Program-made: the position numbers and the translations under genes
The notes under the pieces: generated by a model
Database searches by the model: none
Seen by the model: the letters and a program-made list of their open reading frames with translations, nothing else
What the model was told of the DNA's origin: nothing
Shown here: piece by piece, positions 210-10,313 of the stretch
Layout of the letters: each line of letters opens with the position of its first letter
Numbering within the stretch: position 1 is the stretch's first letter
Assembly: GCA_033442325.1 (NCBI GenBank)
Contig: JAWQFM010000001.1
Coordinates: forward strand, 1,548,138-1,612,137
Reading direction: 5' to 3'
DNA: 64,000 nucleotides
DNA from: Salpingoeca rosetta
Taxonomy: Eukaryota > Protista > Choanoflagellata

Positions 210-1813
210 CATTCAGCATGGTTAAGGACAAGGAGACCAAGAAGAAGACGCCACAGCTGGAGGTCAAGGGCATCGGGTGGGTCATTCTATTCCTTCCTTG
301 CTGTTCACCAACCATTTCAACGCAACAACGCCCAACACAGCGACATCACGCCACACATCACCACAGCAGTACCCCAGCGCACTTCCCTTCTCACAAACCA
401 CAACACCGCAACGAAACAGCAGCCCTTCTCACACCCTGCTTGCCTCCGTGCCTCTCCTCCTCACGTTGGCAGGTTCGACCGAACACTCGGCGGGTTCGAG
501 CTTGACCTGCGCCTGCGCGACCATCTGCTTGCGGAGTTTAAGAAGGCCAAGGCGGCGCAGCTGAAGGGCGACCCAGCGAAGAGCCCGCGCGCAATGGCCA
601 AGCTCCTTAAGGAGGCACAGAAGGTCAAGACGGTCCTCAGCGCAAACACAGAGACGTTTGCACAGGTCGGCCCCCATCCTTGGCGCGTATGCGCTCTGCG
701 AACACCCGTGGGGGAACATCGATACATGTTGTATCTGTTGCATGTGCCTGTGCAGTGTCGTGACGTCAGTCCAAGTTGGGAGACGGGTGTTGCGCCATTG
801 TCGATTGCATGATGATGCACAAGCAGAACAACGCTCGCGTGCCTGCTCACACCCGCCGCCGCCGCCGCCGTGTACACACAAACATGCCAGGTTGAGGGCG
901 TATTTGAGGATCTTGACTTCCGCGTGCAGGTGACGCGGGCGACGCTTGAAACACTCGGTGCCGACCTGCTGCAGCGCGCGGACAAGCCCGCCCTCGCTGC
1001 GCTCCAGTCTGCAAACATCACCATGGCGGATATCCGCTCCCTCATCATCATCGGCGGCGCTGTTCGGTGCGCTTGCGTTTTGAAATTGCTTGGTTTGGGT
1101 TGGGCTGTGCTGGGGTTGGTGTTATTGCTTGGGCTTCGTAGTGTAGCCTCCGGTTGGCTGGTATTGGGTTTGTTCTGGCTGTGTGTCTTGTGCCTCTTGT
1201 GGAGTTGTTACAAGTGTGGGCAAATCAGTGCTACTTTTCCAAGCCTCTCCCTTGTCACATATGCCTGGCAGCGTGCCTGTTCATGTTCTCACCACCTCCC
1301 CCTTACCCGTACGATGTGCCTCGCAGCATTCCCAAGGTGCAGGATGTGCTGCTTGGGCTGACCGGCGGTGTTGAGCTCGGCAAGAACCTCAACGGTGACG
1401 AGGCGTGCGCCCTTGGTGCCGCATACGAGGTGTGTGCCATAAACGTGCTTGCACGGCCCTCCAATGCTGCTAATCTTTTTTCTCTTGGACGTTTGCATGT
1501 CTCATCTTCTTCCCACAACGCGCCGGCGCCAGCCCGCCACACATGCATGCAACACGTACATGCACGCATGCTTATATCCACATCGAGATACACACACAGA
1601 CACACACGCTCACACATTCACCTGACTGCCACACTCTTTAACTCTTACTGCAGGCTGCCGCCCTCAGCAAAGCGTTCCGCGTCAAGAAGTTCATTGCAAA
1701 GGATGCCAACGTGTACCCCATCGAGGCAAGGGCATAATATTGTTCTTGCCGCTTGACACAGACAGACAGAGAGACAGGCACACAGACAGGCACACAGACA
1801 GGCACACAGGCAC

Positions 1814-1904
<91 letters not shown>

Positions 1905-2064
1905 CAGAGACACTCCTCCTGATATTGCTCTTTGGATGGTCATGCACATACCCGTGTTTCAGGTCTCGTACAACCGAACGTACGAGGACGAGGAGGGCGA
2001 ATCCAAGATGAAGACTGTTGTGCGTAGCATTTTCCCCGTCAACAACCCAATCCCCCAGAAGAAG
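210..2064 (+). CDS. HYOU1: Hsp70-family ER chaperone GRP170/HYOU1, internal fragment (5' part outside window; 3' part not found). Exons ~210-276, 473-665, 891-1066, 1327-1429, 1654-1725, 1963-2064
   Basis: Spliced translation ...[29 protein letters not shown]...[22 protein letters not shown]...[13 protein letters not shown]...[31 protein letters not shown]...YPIEVSYNR...NNPIPQKK matches the GRP170 ATPase-domain C-half. GT-AG junctions keep frame, with one GC-AG intron. Confidence 0.85.
1758..1905. repeat. (CAGA)n tetranucleotide microsatellite in HYOU1 intron
   Basis: Direct inspection. Confidence 0.9.
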
Positions 2065-2134
2065 GTCCGTTTCACTCAAGCCACTTTGCTTATAGCTCAG
2101 GGGCGCACATGGCACGCGTTTGCCTGTTGTCCCG

Positions 2135-2238
<104 letters not shown>

Positions 2239-3089
2239 TGTTGACGTTGTATCCACCGCGTGTAAGCGCAGAGGACGCATTGTCAACCGCGCAAAAAAAC
2301 CACGTGTGTGGTGGCGAATTTTCTTCTTGCTCGTTTTCGCCTGCGTGCACGCTGCGTTGCTCGTTTCTTTTGCGTGCATGTGGTTGGTTGGTGGTTGCTT
2401 GTGCCTTTTTTTCTCTCACTCGACCTTCTCACCTCGTGGACACCCACCATCTCGCTGACACACTTCGGAACCCCCCTTACACGACCTTCACTCAAGGACT
2501 CGAAACCAACCCACCTATCCTTCTCCCCTTCCACTCCTCAGGAGTCCACCCTCTTGTAAGTTCGCGCAGCTCAGGTGCTGTCTCATGGGGATGAGGGTGC
2601 GCACATTTTCTCTTGCTTGATCTTGAGAGTGCTGTGATCGTTCGTTCGGAGTCATCCACCGCCCACCCACGCATACACCCACGCCATCACCATCCATTAT
2701 CAACACCAGCTTCTTCAAGCACACACCCACACGCGCATACACGCACACGCATACACACTTGCGTCGTTGTCTTCCACTTGTTCGCGATTTCTGTTCCTGC
2801 CACACCCCGATCTCACTTGCATCAGCCACCACACAATCCTTCAGCTCACGTGTTGCGTGTAGCCACCCATTTTGACATCAACCCCACCAACCCTTACCGA
2901 GTCTCACTTTGCGCCTTGGCGTTCCGCCTCCCTTCTTGTCTCTCTCTCTCTCTCTCTGTCTACCTTCCTGCCCAATACCTGTCTATCTGTCTATCTATCT
3001 GTCTATCTGGATCTCCTGGCCTCTGCGTATTCGTCTCTTCTGATTTGCTTCCATTGTGTTAGAGAGGACCTGCGAACGAGACAGCAGCA

Positions 3090-6000
3090 ATGTCGCGCCA
3101 CAACAAGTCCCAGTACCCACCAGGGTACTCCCACTACAGTCAGTCGCCGTACTCCAACCTTCCCCCTTCTGCCCCTCAGCACCCCGGTGTGCCGTTTCCG
3201 CAGCCGAGCATGTCCGTGCCGTACTTTACGCCCAACGCCTATGGGGCTCGCGGCGCCCCGCCCATGCACGCCCAAATGCAGGCCGGCACGACGCCCATGG
3301 GCGTGCCCAGCTCCTACGCCAGCCCGTATGGCTCGCACATGATTGCCCAGCAGCACCAGCAGCAGCAGCTGCAGCCACACACCATGCCTGGCCAGCCTCC
3401 TCACCAGCACGGCCAGCGCCAGCCCATGCCCTTGCGCACGGGTCCCACCATGCCAGCTTCCACCACCGCCGCAACCAACCCCACCACCACGACGCCATCT
3501 GCTCCGCCGAGCAGCAAGCCGGCCGGAAGCACGCTGCTCTTCAAGCTCGGAGATAAGCCGTCCACCCCGACCACCCCTGAGGTGCAAGGCGACGCCACAA
3601 AGCCAGTCCAGCAGCCGCAGAAGGAACTGGAGGAGGCAGCCACGCCCCCGGCCGCCACCATTACCAAGCCCACAGGACCCAAGCGCCTCTTCGAGGTTAC
3701 CAAGCCCAAGGAAGAGGAGGCGGACAAGAACGCAAAGCCCGCCCAGGAGCACGCCAAGGCACCCGAGCCGCAAGCCCCGGCACCGGCTGCCGTCGCCACC
3801 ACCTCCGCCGCTGCTGCCGAGCAGCCCAGCAAGAAGGAAGAGGAGCAAGCCCCAGCACCAAAGGCAGAGGCACCAGCCAGCAGCGCTGCGCCCCAGGCTG
3901 CCGAGGCCACGCAAGCACAACAGCCCGTTAGCGAGCAAGCGCATCCCGCTGACCAGGAACAGCAGGAGCAACAACAAGAGGAAGCAGAGGAGGAAGAGGA
4001 GGAAGAGGAAGAGGAAGAAGACCAAACCCCACCATCTCCCTTGCCCTTTGAGGGCCCCTACACCATGGCTTTTATGATGAGCCTGCGCGAGAAGCCCCAG
4101 TGCCGGGAGTCGCCAACCAACCCCAACAAGTCGCTCAGTGGTCTTCTTCAAGGCACTAAGAACCCGCTCAACCAGTTCGGCCGCGCCCGCACAGATGATC
4201 GCCCGAGCCGCCGCCAGCCTCGCCCAGGCCCCAATAACCAATCCTCCTCGCTGCTTGTTGGTGGCACCCGCCGTCGCGGCGGTGGTCGCCGGCCCATGCC
4301 GCCACCCCAGGCCCGCGGCCCACACCTCATCTCCGTCCACATCCCCGACACGGATGTCACACTCAAGCGCTCCGAGAACGCATTCAAGCGAGGCGAGCAG
4401 AGCATCATTGGCAACCTTCGTGGGCACCTGGGCAAGATCACCCTGGACAACTTTGACGATATTGTCCTTGACATTATCCAGGAGGCAGAGCAGCTCCCTC
4501 CTGACAGCGAGGAGTTTGACAAGTTCATCGAGCTCATCCAGGACACGGTACGACCCCAAATCCTTGCCGTGTGATGGTTGTGTTTGAACGGAACCGCGCG
4601 TGCATGTGTGCGAATCGAGATGTGTCGGTCTTGTCTTGGCGCTATGCGTCGCTCTTGTTCCAAGTGTGACGCTCTGTTCTTGACGCAAAAGAGCAAAGTG
4701 GTGATCCTGTATCTCGCTTAATTGCATGTCCCTATGTTGTCCTCACCTGAACGTACGTGCATGCGGTTTGTTGCCCATCACAGGCCAAGGATAGCGAGTT
4801 CTTCTCCATGATCTACGCAAAGCTGTGCAAGTCCCTGAGCAGAGCGCGAACGGAGAGTATGGGGGCCAAGTTCCCCACCTTCCAGAACAAGCTCCTGGCC
4901 ATTTGCAAGAAGGATGTGCAGGAAGACTTCAAGACGCTTGACACGGAGATCAAGAAGCTCGAGAAGATTGTCAAGGAGCTGCAGCAAGGTCGGTTGTTCT
5001 GTGTGCGTGTTTGCGTGCGTATGTTTGTACGTGCATGTTTGTTTGCGTATGTTTGTACGTGCATGTTGCGTTTGTTTTCTTTGAGTACGCGTGCATTGTT
5101 CCGCTTTGGTGCTTGTGTCTCGTTGCAAGTGAAGTGGTCTCACATCACTCTGCTCCTACTTCTCCTCGCTGTCCTTCCCCCTTTGTTTGTTACAACTTTG
5201 TCTGCGTAGGCAACCCCAACGATCCCGAGCTTCAGAAGCAGGGCGACGAGCTGTACACGCTCAACCGCAAGCGCCAGAAGCTCATTGGCAACGCTGTCTT
5301 TGTCGCTGAGCTCTTCAACGAAACTGTGGTACGTTACAGTGCAGGGTTGAATGCGACTACCCAACAGCAACCAAGCACGACAAACACCAAAACAGCGACA
5401 ACAACATCAACATCACCTCCTCCTCCTCCTCCTCCTCCTTCTTCTTCTTGTTCTTGTTCCCTGTTCTTTCGCCATTCTACGATTTGTGTACGTTCCGTCG
5501 TGGGTTTGTTTCCTTTCGTTCTTTTTTTTTTCGGCCGAAGTGGTATCTGCAGCCTTGAGTTATCCCCATCTCGATGGTTGTTCGAGTCAGGCCAAGACCG
5601 ACACTATATGTTTACAATAGTTGTGCACAAGCTATCGCTCCTTTCGCAAGCATGCGTTATGGTGTCAATACCACTATGCATTGCATGAAAGTGGACGAGT
5701 GCATGCATTCATGCCTTGAGCACACATTCAACCCAATCCGTTTCTTTGTCGTTTCTGTGTTTCCCTTCGTGCTGTTCTTGTGCTTCTTTCTGCGCTCGGC
5801 TTTCAACCGCGTGCTGTGCGCTTTCTTCCTTCATCTCCCTGTACTTTCTTTCGTTCTGATGTTTTGCTTGCCAAGTAACTGTGATGGCGCTGCTCTCACC
5901 GTTTCGATCCGCACCACCCATGCACTGCAGGTAAGCCTTGACCTGCTCAAGCAGGTTGTGGAGACGTACTGGAAGCAGAACGAGGCCGAGGACGCGGTCA

Positions 6001-8738
6001 TGTGCATGTGCAAGATTGTGGAGAAGGCAGGCGCCAAGCTTGAGAAGGAGCAGAAGCCGCTTCTCGAGGAGTACCTCGGCCGACTCTCCGGCTGCAAGCA
6101 CATCCCCAACAAGCTCCAGTTCTTCATCATGGACATCAAGGACCTTCGCAAGAAGGGGTGCGTTGCATGTGTGAGTGTGAGAGAGAGAGGCAGAGAGAGA
6201 GTGTGTGTGTTTGCGTGTGTGAAGGGGGATTGGGCGTGCAATGAAGTCGACGCACTCTTAACAGCCTCACGTTTTTCCATACATTTTCACTCATTCACCA
6301 CTGCTCCGGTCATGATGATGACTGCTTGCATCACACACCCCACAGATGGGTCAAGCCTGAAGATGGTCCGCGCAAGCGCAAGGATGTTATTGCCGAGGCG
6401 CAGGCTGAGATGAAGTCACATGGCCGCCCACTGCAGGGCAGGCGCACCAGCTCCTCCTCACAGGTATGCCACACACAACACACACACACACGCACACACA
6501 CAGAGCACGTCTGTATACAAGATTTTGATGGTGGTGGCATGATGATTGTTACATGATTCTTGAACATCAATAGGAAGTGTCGTCTGATCGGGCGATGAAA
6601 GCCAGCGCTGGAGCCCATGACGATGAATCATGTCTCTGACCACCACCCACCAGTTTCGTCTGTTGCTGTATCTTTACTATTTGTTGCTGTATCGTAACGA
6701 TCGCAGAAGTGCTCCATTGTGCCACCAACAACGTCTTGACTCACCCCTGTTCTCTCTGCTCGTTCTCTCTGCTCGTCTCGTCTCCAATGTTTTTCTCTTC
6801 CTCGTACAGCCGGGTGCAAAGGCAAAGATGACGCAGGAGCGCCGCGACGTGAACAAGATTGGTCTTCAGGGCAAGCTTGCGCCCATGCGCCGCGCCAACC
6901 AGGCGTCCCGCTTCTCCCGCGGTTCCCGCCCGACGCCGCCCGGAAGCCAGTCAGCCACCCCGGCCCCAAGCAAGCCCGCCAACCGCTACAAGCTCCTTGG
7001 CGAGGCTGAGCCCACTCCCGAGCCTGAGACCCCTGCCGCCGAGCCCGCCCAGGACCTCGACAAGCTCAAGCGCTCCTGCAGGAACACCATTGAGGTGCTT
7101 CGCTCTGCGTGCTGTGTCGAGTGTTGTGTTTGTGTACTGGGTTGGTCGTGTTCACATGTCCGTCCACAACCCCATTTCGACCACTGATCATTTCCTCTTG
7201 CTCGCTTGCCCCCACCCAATGATTGACATGAATCATTTCACGTGCGCAGGAGTATGTGCTGAACAAGGACGACAAAGAGCTGTACGCGTGCGTGCGTGAG
7301 CTTGGCGAGGACCAGTACCACGTGTTTGTGTCTGAGCTTGTGGCCGACCTGTTTGGTCTGATCAAGGCCCCGAAGCGCGAGGCCCTCCTCCAGCTGCTGC
7401 AGAAGCTCATGTCCGAGAAGATTCTCACCCACAAGCACGCCCTGCAAGCGTAAGCCGCTGTGTGTGTGTGTGTGTGTGTGATCGATACATGTTGTTGCGC
7501 ATTGCGTTGTGTTCTTGTTTTTGTATTTTTGTGTGTGGCCTTTGTCGAAGCTTCGAGCTTTTTAGCGGCAGTGATTGGCCAGATGTCTATGATGTGAATT
7601 AACCATGCTAATCCTGAATGCCCCTTCATTTACTTGGAGGTGCATACCGTGACGAGCAAATAATCTCGTTAAACTGAGACATCTTGTCGCTGTGCTGTGT
7701 GTTTGTGTGCCATCGATTCTGCTCCTCCTCATTTCCCCACCCGAGTGCTGACCTGCGCGTGATTCTCACACCATGTTTTTGTTTTCGCTGTTTATTTGCT
7801 TGCTTGCCTGCGTCACGCCATCATCTTCGTATCTGTTCGTATCTATCTTTCGTGGTTGGTGTACACAGCACGCACGACCGCCTGGAGACGCTCGATGACG
7901 ACAGCATGGACTCGCCAAAGGCCCCTGCATTCCTGGCGCAGTTTGTTGTCAACGTGAGTTGTTGTTGTGAATGTTGAGCTCCACTGCATTTATCAGTTTT
8001 GTCTGTGCCTCGTCGCTGAGTGTGCTTCTGTTCTAGTTTTACGCTACGTGGCGGATATTGGGCACTCACTCACACTCTTTGCTCCTTGGTCCTGTGGTGG
8101 CATCATTGGAAAGGGTCTTGACGACAACGAGATTGAGACGCTGCTGAAGGATGAGTCCACGCTCAAGCCGCTGATGAACCCCTTCAGCTTTGTTGTTGAG
8201 GTTGTTGCCGCCATGAACGAAGCCAAGGGCGAGGAAGCCGCCAAGAAGCTCACCGCTGCCCTGGGCGGTGACCTGTCCTCCTTCCAGAAGAGGAAGAACG
8301 AGGCGCTGTTTAAGCGCACGCTGGAGCGCAAGGTACGTCTTTCTTTGCACTCCGTTGTTCCTTGTACTGTTGGTTGCTCTTGTGTATGTATGTCGCTGTT
8401 TGACTGTGTCCGGGTGATGAACTCGTGTTTTGAATCAAGATGTATCAGAGTGACCTTTGCGTCACGTGCTGAAGAGAATCACATGCACCACCTTCTGACG
8501 GGCTGTTGTTGTCATTGTGCTGCCGATGTTGTTGTTGTTGTTGTTGTCCATGGTTTTGGCTTGTGACGTCTGTGAGACGTGCGTACGAACGAGCATGTGT
8601 TCTAATCTAACGTTGGCTCTTCCCACTTGTATCTCACGACATGGCTTGTCTTGTTGCACACGTTGCACTGCCTCCTGTTGTCTCCTGTGACTGTTGTGAT
8701 TGCAGGGCTTGTCCTTCCTGCTGCCCACGGAAGCTTAA
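3090..8738 (+). CDS. EIF4G: Translation initiation factor eIF4G (MIF4G + MA3). Exons 3090-4547, 4784-4988, 5210-5328, 5931-6157, 6346-6463, 6810-7094, 7250-7449, 7869-7953, 8114-8332, 8706-8738
   Basis: P/Q-rich N-terminus and YTMAFMM 4E-binding-like motif. MIF4G: LKRSENAF..LRGHLGKITLDNFD..FSMIYAKLC..FQNKLLAIC..GNAVFVAELF..LQFFIMDIKDLRKKGWV. MA3: IEEYVLNKD..ACVREL..MDSPKAPAFLAQF. All junctions are GT-AG and in frame; ends KGLSFLLPTEA*. Confidence 0.9.
5539..5729 (+). ncRNA. Candidate structured intronic RNA (H/ACA-like) in eIF4G intron 3
   Basis: Non-repetitive block with many stems: AGTGGTAT/ATACCACT, GCCT/AGGC, CCATC/GATGG, GACACTA/TGGTGTC, ATAGTT/AGCTAT, GCATGAA/TTCATGC. ANANNA at 5668-73 and ACA+3 nt at 5724-29. 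Confidence 0.4.
6530..6647 (+). ncRNA. Intronic box C/D snoRNA, U49/SNORD49-like (eIF4G intron 5)
   Basis: Perfect 8-bp terminal stem GGTGGTGG/CCACCACC, box C ATGATGA (6539-45), box D CTGA (6636-39), D' CTGA (6584-87). D' is preceded by AATAGGAAGTGTCGT, near-identical to the U49 guide AATAGGAAGTGCCGT (antisense to LSU UCGGCUCUUCCUAU). Internal 9-bp stem ACATGATTC/GAATCATGT. Confidence 0.85.
7581..7684 (+). ncRNA. Intronic box C/D snoRNA with two guides: U6 Am53 (mgU6-53/SNORD8-like) and LSU rRNA (U30-like) (eIF4G intron 7)
   Basis: Terminal stem AGATGTC/GACATCT, box C ATGATGT (7589-95), D' CTGA (7614-17), C' GTGACGA (7649-55), D CTGA (7674-77). D' guide CCATGCTAATC is the reverse complement of U6 GAUUAGCAUGG. 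D guide AATCTCGTTAA is the reverse complement of LSU UUAACGAGAUU. Confidence 0.85.
8408..8503 (+). ncRNA. Intronic box C/D snoRNA, U33/snR55-like (SSU rRNA Um1326 human / Um1269 yeast equivalent) (eIF4G intron 9)
   Basis: Stem GTCCG/CGGGC, box C GTGATGA (8414-20), D' CAGA, hairpin GTGAC/GTCAC, C' TGAAGA, D CTGA (8495-98). Guide CATGCACCACC (8482-92) is antisense to SSU GGUGGUGCAUG with the same D+5 register as U33. Confidence 0.85.
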
Positions 8739-10239: not shown

Positions 10240-10313
10240 TGCTCCATACCAGGCTCGAACTGATGACCTTGAGTTTATTAGACTCACGCGCTAACCAACT
10301 GCGCCAATGGAGC
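10240..10313 (-). tRNA. tRNA-Ile (anticodon AAT)
   Basis: Minus strand reads GCTCCATTGGCGCAGTTGGTTAGCGCGTGAGTCTAATAAACTCAAGGTCATCAGTTCGAGCCTGGTATGGAGCA: full cloverleaf, A and B boxes, anticodon loop CT-AAT-AA, and downstream T-runs (Pol III terminator). Confidence 0.95.

Follow-up and report, generated by a model that had tools for sequence, protein, structure and literature searches.

In fungi and plants, the double use of an snR53-type guide for rRNA and U6 has already been described. Across fungi, the predicted targets of the snR53 family are 18S-796 and U6, of which 18S is the defining target; S. cerevisiae does not modify the equivalent position of its U6 (PMC5824354). In Arabidopsis, 18S A801 and U6 A48 are both methylated, and RiboMeth-seq assigned SnoR53Y, as the sole guide, to the two sites; U30 was assigned to 25S A2322 (PMC8053127). 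For Neurospora crassa, a multi-function snoRNA (CD11) with predicted targets in 18S, U6, and 26S has been published, which was likened by its authors to mgU6-47 (Liu et al. 2009, PMC2780460). From the guide sequence of CD11, we infer that its U6 site would correspond to human A53. Among the vertebrate guides, SNORD8 acts on U6 A53 and SNORD30 on 28S A3804 (PMC6466398), and mgU6-77 is named solely as a U6 guide in PMC5855946. A link between snR53 and SNORD8 was not found in the literature, and neither a snoRNA catalogue nor a ribose-methylation map of a choanoflagellate was found in the searchable literature.

The locus described here belongs to the choanoflagellate Salpingoeca rosetta and lies in a window of 64,000 nucleotides, which is the whole stretch of DNA that was analysed and to which all coordinates refer. 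It encodes, with fair probability, an intronic box C/D snoRNA that combines two guides: an snR53-type D' guide directed at A917 of the SSU rRNA and very probably also at A55 of U6, and a U30-type D guide directed at the LSU rRNA. The features are as follows.

7450-7868, plus strand: host intron (GT..AG) of an eIF4G-like gene; the flanking exons are 7248-7449 and 7869-7953, and 7449 is directly followed by 7869 in a spliced contig
7581-7684, plus strand: whole box C/D snoRNA, 104 nt, sense to the host intron; best Rfam match is snoR53Y over 7582-7684
7581-7587, plus strand: terminal stem, 5' side, AGATGTC; pairs with 7678-7684 over 7 bp (sequence and fold)
7589-7595, plus strand: box C, ATGATGT, ending in a U capable of pairing with A7673
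7603-7613, plus strand: D' guide, CCATGCTAATC; 11 bp with SSU rRNA (A917) and 11 bp with U6 (A55)
7614-7617, plus strand: box D', CTGA (sequence and Rfam alignment)
7619-7647, plus strand: internal hairpin as spacer in the D'-C' interval (fold)
7649-7655, plus strand: box C', GTGACGA; opposite the plant snoU30 C box in the Rfam alignment
7662-7673, plus strand: D guide, AATCTCGTTAAA; 11 bp with LSU TTAACGAGATT through guide positions 2-12 (7662-7672)
7674-7677, plus strand: box D, CTGA (sequence)
7678-7684, plus strand: terminal stem, 3' side, GACATCT; pairs with 7581-7587

A reading of the sequence alone had placed a double-guide box C/D snoRNA at 7581-7684, and boxes, terminal stem, and fold are indeed all present. 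Box C and box D are united by the 7-bp stem, and both internal boxes, D' and C', exist, as in box C/D RNAs in general. The last U of box C is unusual; it can pair with A7673, the base preceding box D, and such a pair preserves stem II of the K-turn. The minimum free energy of the fold is -33.8 kcal/mol (z = -3.9), and an equally good value was reached in 0 of 200 shuffles.

The host intron is spliced on the sense strand, as are the neighbouring introns 7093-7247 and 7954-8113. The exons of the host gene give weak matches to the MA3 and MIF4G domains, both under the Pfam cut-offs. This gene is heavily represented in RNA-like runs. Its snoRNA intron is spanned by contigs of low depth (7-46, compared to 340-7000 for the exons), whereas the two neighbouring introns, which are snoRNA-free, are not spanned by any contig. 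Further snoRNA candidates were found in neighbouring introns of the host gene.

For the assessment of the guides, the rRNA copies of the species were located in the genome by means of conserved-motif patterns. The D' guide (7603-7613) forms 11 of 11 Watson-Crick pairs with GATTAGCATGG of the species' own U6, where position 5 falls on A55. The same 11-mer exists in the SSU rRNA and is again matched in 11 of 11 pairs, with position 5 on A917. The D guide (7662-7672) forms 11 perfect pairs with the LSU rRNA and places position 5 at the second A of UUAACGAG, as selected by the U30 guide AAUCUCGUUAA. This target is A2956 in the LSU copy of contig 30 and approximately A2966 in that of contig 3; numbering varies by copy because the contig-30 LSU is broken after about nt 3615. 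Each guide thus offers at least 10 nt that abut its D-type box and are complementary to the organism's own rRNA or snRNA. The SSU target was found in all five SSU copies examined and the LSU target in all three LSU copies covering the region; the rDNA unit of contig 9 is devoid of the LSU target region. The U6 gene is single-copy and carries the target of the D' guide. When the guides were shuffled, at least 11 pairs spanning position 5 occurred in 10 and 11 of 2000 cases, i. e. in about 0.5% for each guide. We take U6 A55 to be the equivalent of human A53 and Arabidopsis A48, SSU A917 to be that of yeast 18S A796 and Arabidopsis A801, and the LSU target to be that of Arabidopsis 25S A2322 and human 28S A3804.

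These results agree with several statements of the sequence-only reading. It had proposed an 11-nt U6 match at the A53 equivalent and an 11-nt LSU match at the U30 adenosine; both are found with 11 bp, in the register of the vertebrate mgU6-53 consensus and of the plant snoU30 consensus, respectively. The alignment to U6, SSU, and LSU that it had suggested as a check yields perfect 11-bp complementarity to all three RNAs. It had, however, regarded the RNA as a U6/LSU chimera and the SSU match as partial and a minor caveat. This part has to be revised: The SSU rRNA carries the complete 11-mer, and the best Rfam match is snoR53Y.

An Rfam scan of the locus at gathering thresholds gave no match. 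Partial matches were obtained in an E-value scan for snoR53Y (RF01279; 28.8 bits, gathering score 43), plant snoU30 (RF01283; 23.4 bits, gathering score 45), and mgU6-53 (RF00377, snoU6-53; 19.8 bits, gathering score 36). As every score is sub-gathering, the family assignment is based on guides and boxes and not on whole-sequence homology. With respect to the boxes, all three matches place the guides in the same register. The snR53/snoR53Y guide CCAUGCUAAU selects, in the consensus register, the A of the SSU rRNA that ends AUUA and precedes GCAUGG (A917), and the fifth position of the mgU6-53 guide lies on U6 A55 within 11 bp. The U30 guide matches too, albeit in the 3' (D) half. It is very improbable that the element is a chance look-alike of a box C/D snoRNA or a non-expressed intronic relic. 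Such a reading would fit the low Rfam scores and also the RNA data, which consist of contigs that span the whole intron, so that the ends of an RNA of ~104 nt are not visible in them. It conflicts with the presence of four boxes in the right order and spacing, with the 7-bp terminal stem, and with the compensated pair of C box and D flank. Moreover, two 11-bp guides abut D' and D and point to methylation sites known in other eukaryotes, at a frequency in the shuffle control that argues against chance, and the neighbouring introns hold more candidates of this kind.

Elsewhere in the genome, neither CCATGCTAAT-N-CTGA nor ATCTCGTTAA-N-CTGA occurs beyond this locus on contig 1 and its duplicate on contig 14. 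The latter comprises the whole locus and is roughly 95% identical; because the two copies are too alike (about 1.5% substitutions), their identical snoRNA sequence cannot indicate selection, and the duplicate was rejected as independent support. Two matches to the relaxed pattern TCTCGTTAA are not surrounded by box C/D features and were judged to be due to chance. A weaker, U6-biased element resembling mgU6-53 was found on the minus strand of contig 8, where it occupies roughly 68 nt at 329782-329849. It possesses a perfect C box and a 7-bp terminal stem, and its guide, which agrees with GCCAUGCUAAUA of the vertebrate mgU6-53 consensus, forms 12 bp with U6 and 10 bp with the SSU rRNA. ATGA and GCGA stand in place of canonical D and D' boxes, and the element is located in an intron of a RhoGAP-like gene, in antisense orientation. 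The contig-8 element may be a relic; if it functions, U6 could be guided mainly by it.

Because the full 11-mer is common to SSU rRNA and U6, both are equally good targets of the D' guide, and for the same reason the U6 target is not separable from the SSU target by sequence. The snoRNA might guide SSU and LSU rRNA only, the U6 match being a by-product of the GAUUAGCAUGG that U6 and SSU rRNA share; U6 A55 would then be unmethylated or served by the contig-8 element. We consider this somewhat unlikely. It is in line with the top Rfam match being snoR53Y and not snoU6-53, with 18S as the defining target of the snR53 family, with the unmodified U6 position of S. cerevisiae (both PMC5824354), and with the C box, stem, and stronger U6 pairing of the contig-8 element. 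However, the complementarity to U6 equals that to the SSU rRNA exactly, and Arabidopsis methylates both sites with SnoR53Y as sole assigned guide (PMC8053127). Furthermore, U6 receives its modifications in the nucleolus, the site of action of rRNA guides, and the contig-8 element is weakened by its missing canonical boxes and its antisense position.

The converse view, which is that of the sequence-only reading, is a dedicated U6 guide of the mgU6-53 type fused to a U30-type LSU guide, with an incidental SSU match. It is quite improbable, although the guide pairs with U6 over 11 bp in the mgU6-53 register and animals, to which choanoflagellates are sister, possess a U6-only mgU6-53. The SSU match has the full length of 11 bp and lies on a residue whose methylation is directed by a homologous guide in both yeast (A796) and Arabidopsis (A801). 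In addition, the guide stops short of the U6-specific GGCC, into which the guides of the vertebrate consensus and of the contig-8 element extend.

We thus prefer the three-substrate snoRNA. It would probably be released from the intron of the eIF4G pre-mRNA, be expressed as a mature RNA, and probably assemble with Snu13, Nop56, Nop58, and fibrillarin, the usual protein partners of box C/D RNAs. The resulting snoRNP is expected to direct 2'-O-methylation of the ribose of whichever target nucleotide pairs with guide position 5, counted upstream from each D-type box, which predicts modification at three sites. The D' guide is the ancient, conserved snR53/snoR53Y guide and would target A917 of the SSU rRNA; given the identical 11-mer in U6 and the nucleolar modification of U6, A55 is very probably a second target. 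The D guide, being of the U30 type, would target the LSU adenosine between GGAUUA and CGAGAUU.

In metagenomes, the combination of this D' guide with this D guide had 0 matches, whereas the D' guide alone occurs in at least 120 contigs. Among the matches listed, 56 possess a recognisable terminal stem and D box, and several are chance occurrences in coding DNA. A D guide containing TCTCGTT does not occur among them, nor does an evident choanoflagellate relative. The listed contigs bear many different D guides. An AUUAA upstream of the guide was considered as an additional pairing element and rejected; it is part of the plant consensus and is not conserved across the metagenome matches. The descriptions of plant, fungal, and vertebrate snoRNAs in the publications consulted do not contain the pairing of this D' guide with a U30-type LSU guide. 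Novelty seems to be limited to this pairing, which seems undescribed. The sequence-only reading knew of no other case of the fusion. The U30-type partner guide indeed appears to be new, but not the combination of U6 and LSU: As CD11 of Neurospora is predicted to serve 18S, U6, and 26S (PMC2780460), a single RNA for U6 and LSU is not unprecedented.

The snoRNA is an ordinary one of a known kind; the locus is a useful and testable annotation, and the mechanism is not new. Second guides have been freely swapped between snoRNA families, and the U30 type occurs only in this genome when compared to the metagenome matches listed. If confirmed, the locus would add a holozoan case to the fungal and plant examples of one guide serving 18S and U6, support the notion of an ancient link between the snR53-type guide and the methylation of U6 A53, both of them old, and suggest a source of vertebrate mgU6-53. 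In a broader reading, which is speculative and rather unlikely, one snoRNA ties the modification of both ribosomal subunits and of the catalytic RNA of the spliceosome to a translation-factor gene, and may also capture the origin of mgU6-53. If this origin were true, the pan-eukaryotic snR53-type guide would, in this close unicellular relative of animals, still serve SSU rRNA and U6 equally by means of an identical 11-mer. The contig-8 copy with its animal-type, U6-extended guide would then represent a split to a U6-only guide under way, and the split would predate the loss of the site from animal SSU rRNA.

Compared to known systems, the snoRNA is most similar to snR53/snoR53Y. It shares the D' guide core one nucleotide from the CUGA D' box, the same SSU target (yeast 18S A796, Arabidopsis A801), and the same second match in U6 (Arabidopsis U6 A48; predicted in fungi). 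Due to the internal hairpin, its 104 nt exceed the 62-83 nt typical of this family. Its D guide is of the U30 type and directed at the LSU, whereas the plant consensus has no evident D guide and the guides of the fungal members go to other 25S sites. Neurospora CD11 follows the same three-substrate logic, with a D' guide for 18S (Am793) and U6 and a D guide for 26S, and is likewise intron-encoded; its LSU site is the fungus-specific 26S A356 instead of the U30 site. Vertebrate mgU6-53 (SNORD8/SNORD9) has the D' guide (C)CAUGCUAAU in the same register and selects the same U6 adenosine (human A53). In contrast to the guide studied here, it runs into the U6-specific GGC, and an SSU target is not described for it. 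Its 3' guide region is without a known target, whereas here this region is a U30-type LSU guide, and its host gene is CHD8 instead of eIF4G. SNORD30 and plant snoU30 select the same LSU adenosine as our D guide. In the plant snoU30 model, however, the guide is located upstream of D' in the 5' half and not upstream of D, and U30 is a stand-alone RNA in plants and vertebrates, whereas here it is joined with an snR53-type guide. Finally, mgU6-77 (SNORD10) was reportedly described by Tycowski et al. in 1998 as a nucleolar box C/D RNA with one U6 guide and one 28S guide. Its working is similar, but guides and target sites are unrelated; mgU6-77 is therefore an analogy and not a homologue of the S. 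rosetta snoRNA.

The candidate box C/D snoRNA in the intron of an eIF4G-like gene (eIF4G snoRNA) reads as a textbook member of its class. Its elements are listed together with the other box C/D candidates considered here.

Elements of the eIF4G snoRNA, read from the sequence, and further box C/D candidates
7581-7684, + strand: whole snoRNA
7581-7587 with 7678-7684, + strand: terminal stem, AGATGTC with GACATCT
7589-7595, + strand: box C, ATGATGT
7603-7613, + strand: D' guide CCATGCTAATC, adjoining box D'
7614-7617, + strand: box D', CTGA
between box D' and box C', + strand: hairpin spacer
7649-7655, + strand: box C', GTGACGA
7662-7673, + strand: D guide AATCTCGTTAAA, adjoining box D
7674-7677, + strand: box D, CTGA
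6531-6645, + strand: second candidate, in a neighbouring intron of the host gene; its terminal stem is 8 bp long and its Rfam match is SNORD49-like, at 26.8 bits against a gathering score of 37
8406-8506, + strand: third candidate, also in a neighbouring intron, immediately downstream of host exon 8114-8333, with the C box GTGATGA
G000:C8:329782-329849 (contig 8 of the same organism's genome; L143 2050 down to 1983), - strand: box C/D-like element of 68 nt, found by a relaxed genome search

Box C deviates from the consensus only in its last base, a U instead of an A. According to the established K-turn model, this U can pair with A7673 just before box D, which would preserve stem II. The predicted fold has a minimum free energy of -33.8 kcal/mol (z = -3.9) with the terminal stem closed, and none of 200 shuffled sequences was as stable.

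The targets were sought in the organism's own genome (55.4 Mb, 68 contigs). It contains one U6 gene (G000:C9:815095-815276, corresponding to L001:1501-1682), which has a TATA element upstream and a T-run terminator, and whose nucleotides 51-61 are GATTAGCATGG. Between GCGCAA and AGGATGA, the loop of its internal stem-loop holds an insert of about 65 nt that folds as an extended hairpin; the snoRNA target precedes this insert and is not affected by it. The rRNA units were located via conserved motifs, and their copies (L137, L005, L138, L139) are heterogeneous. The unit on contig 30 (L137, G000:C30:791000-800999) comprises 5.8S, an SSU 2096 nt long and an LSU that is broken after about nt 3615, the point up to which it matches the copy on contig 3; it lacks the peptidyl-transferase, A-loop and sarcin-ricin motifs, which the contig-3 and contig-8 copies contain. 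On contig 9 (L005, G000:C9:14500-24000), the SSU spans 3272 nt compared to 2096 nt on contig 30, and the LSU reaches only to about model position 600.

A guide scan anchored at position 5 of the guide was performed against these SSU, LSU and U6 sequences. Guide positions 1-11 of the D' guide form 11 perfect pairs with the SSU at A917 and, base for base the same, with U6 at A55. In the D guide, positions 2-12 form 11 perfect pairs with the LSU sequence TTAACGAGATT at A2956; the contig-3 copy has this adenosine at about A2966. All five SSU copies read contain the SSU target, and all three LSU copies covering the region contain the LSU target. Of 2000 shuffles per guide, 10 and 11 respectively reached 11 pairs across position 5. 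The sequence-only reading had claimed a chimeric guide complementary to U6 and LSU, and this double complementarity of 11 bp each holds for the species' own RNAs. It had, however, played down the SSU match as partial, whereas the SSU carries the same full 11-mer as U6. A guide for U6 and LSU only, as then proposed, is thus improbable. An inactive look-alike is more improbable still. We favour, with somewhat more than even confidence, a guide for all three RNAs, SSU, U6 and LSU, as the complementarities suggest.

The remaining possibility, a guide for SSU and LSU only, has perhaps one chance in a few. It would share both rRNA matches with the three-target guide and dispense with the U6 match, and it is here that the contig-8 element matters. 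The terminal stem of this element is 7 bp long and its C box, GTGATGA, is perfect; the D' position reads ATGA and the D position GCGA. Its guide GGCCATGCTAATA forms 12 bp with U6 at A55, compared to 10 bp with the SSU at A917; the 12-nt core GCCAUGCUAAUA is the same as in the vertebrate mgU6-53 consensus (Rfam 21.9 bits; gathering score 36). With respect to a RhoGAP-like gene, the element occupies the antisense strand of an intron, and it may be either a relic or a guide dedicated to U6. Were it active, it would make the action of the eIF4G snoRNA on U6 redundant.

The host intron spans 7450-7868, as 7449 is joined to 7869 in contigs from RNA-like public runs, and the snoRNA lies on its sense strand. 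The introns on either side (7093-7247 and 7954-8113, both GT..AG) are also spliced in these runs. Weak MA3 and MIF4G matches of the exons, each under the Pfam cut-off, fit an eIF4G-like gene. The snoRNA-bearing intron is covered end to end by contigs of low depth (7-46, compared to 340-7000 on exons); the two short introns without a snoRNA have no coverage in the RNA-like runs. Such coverage would fit an intron that is retained or processed slowly; the contigs do not reveal mature RNA ends. For the candidate at 6531-6645, a simple guide scan found no target of at least 10 bp. The D guide of the candidate at 8406-8506 forms 13 bp (one G-U) with SSU rRNA, position 5 falling on U1460 within GGUGGUGCAUGG, a region methylated elsewhere by snR55/U33-type guides. 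The sole Rfam match at gathering level within the window is a tRNA gene (10240-10313, - strand, 63.5 bits).

At least 3 kb of the locus, roughly 95% identical, recur around G000:C14:1108865-1111879 (L013), which may reflect a recent duplication or a haplotype that was not collapsed. Microsatellite indels and some 50 substitutions make up most of the differences between the two copies; the snoRNA sequence is the same in both, and this duplicate is the only other exact genomic occurrence of the D' and D guides. Differences seen in RNA-like contigs include positions 6937, 6959, 7040 and 7792, and both copies are therefore represented in those runs.

An E-value-based Rfam scan of the locus gave three families. 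The best, snoR53Y (28.8 bits), extends across the whole RNA and aligns AUUAACCAUGCUAAU-CUGA. Plant snoU30 follows with 23.4 bits, the C'-guide-D part of the snoRNA being aligned onto C-guide-D' of U30, and snoU6-53 is third with 19.8 bits. None of the three reaches its gathering score, so that guide and register, and not overall homology, are the basis of the assignment. The RNA is probably functional and represents an ordinary box C/D snoRNA of the snR53/snoR53Y type; of its two guides, the second is lineage-specific and of the U30 type. Processed out of the eIF4G intron, it would assemble into a canonical box C/D snoRNP. Judging from complementarity, the D' guide would direct methylation to SSU A917, and probably to U6 A55 as well, and the D guide to the LSU adenosine at the U30 site.

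The novelty of this guide pairing was assessed in metagenome contigs, which carry no taxonomy. The same pair of D' and D guides occurred in none of them. A C box together with the D' guide CCATGCTAAT was found in at least 120 contigs; among the matches listed, 56 have a recognisable terminal stem and a D box. The D guides among these listed matches fall into many classes, for example one with 13 bp to LSU 430, probably fungal, and one from marine samples with 10 bp to LSU 3498. Many D-guide classes beside one D' guide indicate an ancient, fixed D' element with a labile partner. The U30 core TCTCGTT is in none of the D guides among the matches listed; within this comparison, the U30-type partner was seen only in the present genome.

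The meaning of the D' guide is settled by published cases. In Arabidopsis, RiboMeth-seq detected both 18S Am801 and U6 Am48, which were both assigned to SnoR53Y, and 25S Am2322 was assigned to U30 (PMC8053127). The fungal snR53 family guides 18S-796, and a second target of its D' element in U6 was predicted in all fungal lineages except Saccharomycetaceae (PMC5824354). Neurospora CD11 was published as a multi-function snoRNA with predicted targets in 18S, U6 and 26S (PMC2780460). In human, SNORD8/9 act on U6 A53 and SNORD30 on 28S A3804 (PMC6466398). Our literature search found no paper joining snR53 to SNORD8 and none on choanoflagellate snoRNAs; the present case is of value mainly because the organism is a holozoan and because snR53 may be linked to animal mgU6-53. 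U6 is modified in the nucleolus and is therefore within reach of a nucleolar rRNA guide. In vertebrates, mgU6-77 is a single RNA for rRNA and U6, and it is established for fungi, plants and vertebrates alike that one RNA can act on both.
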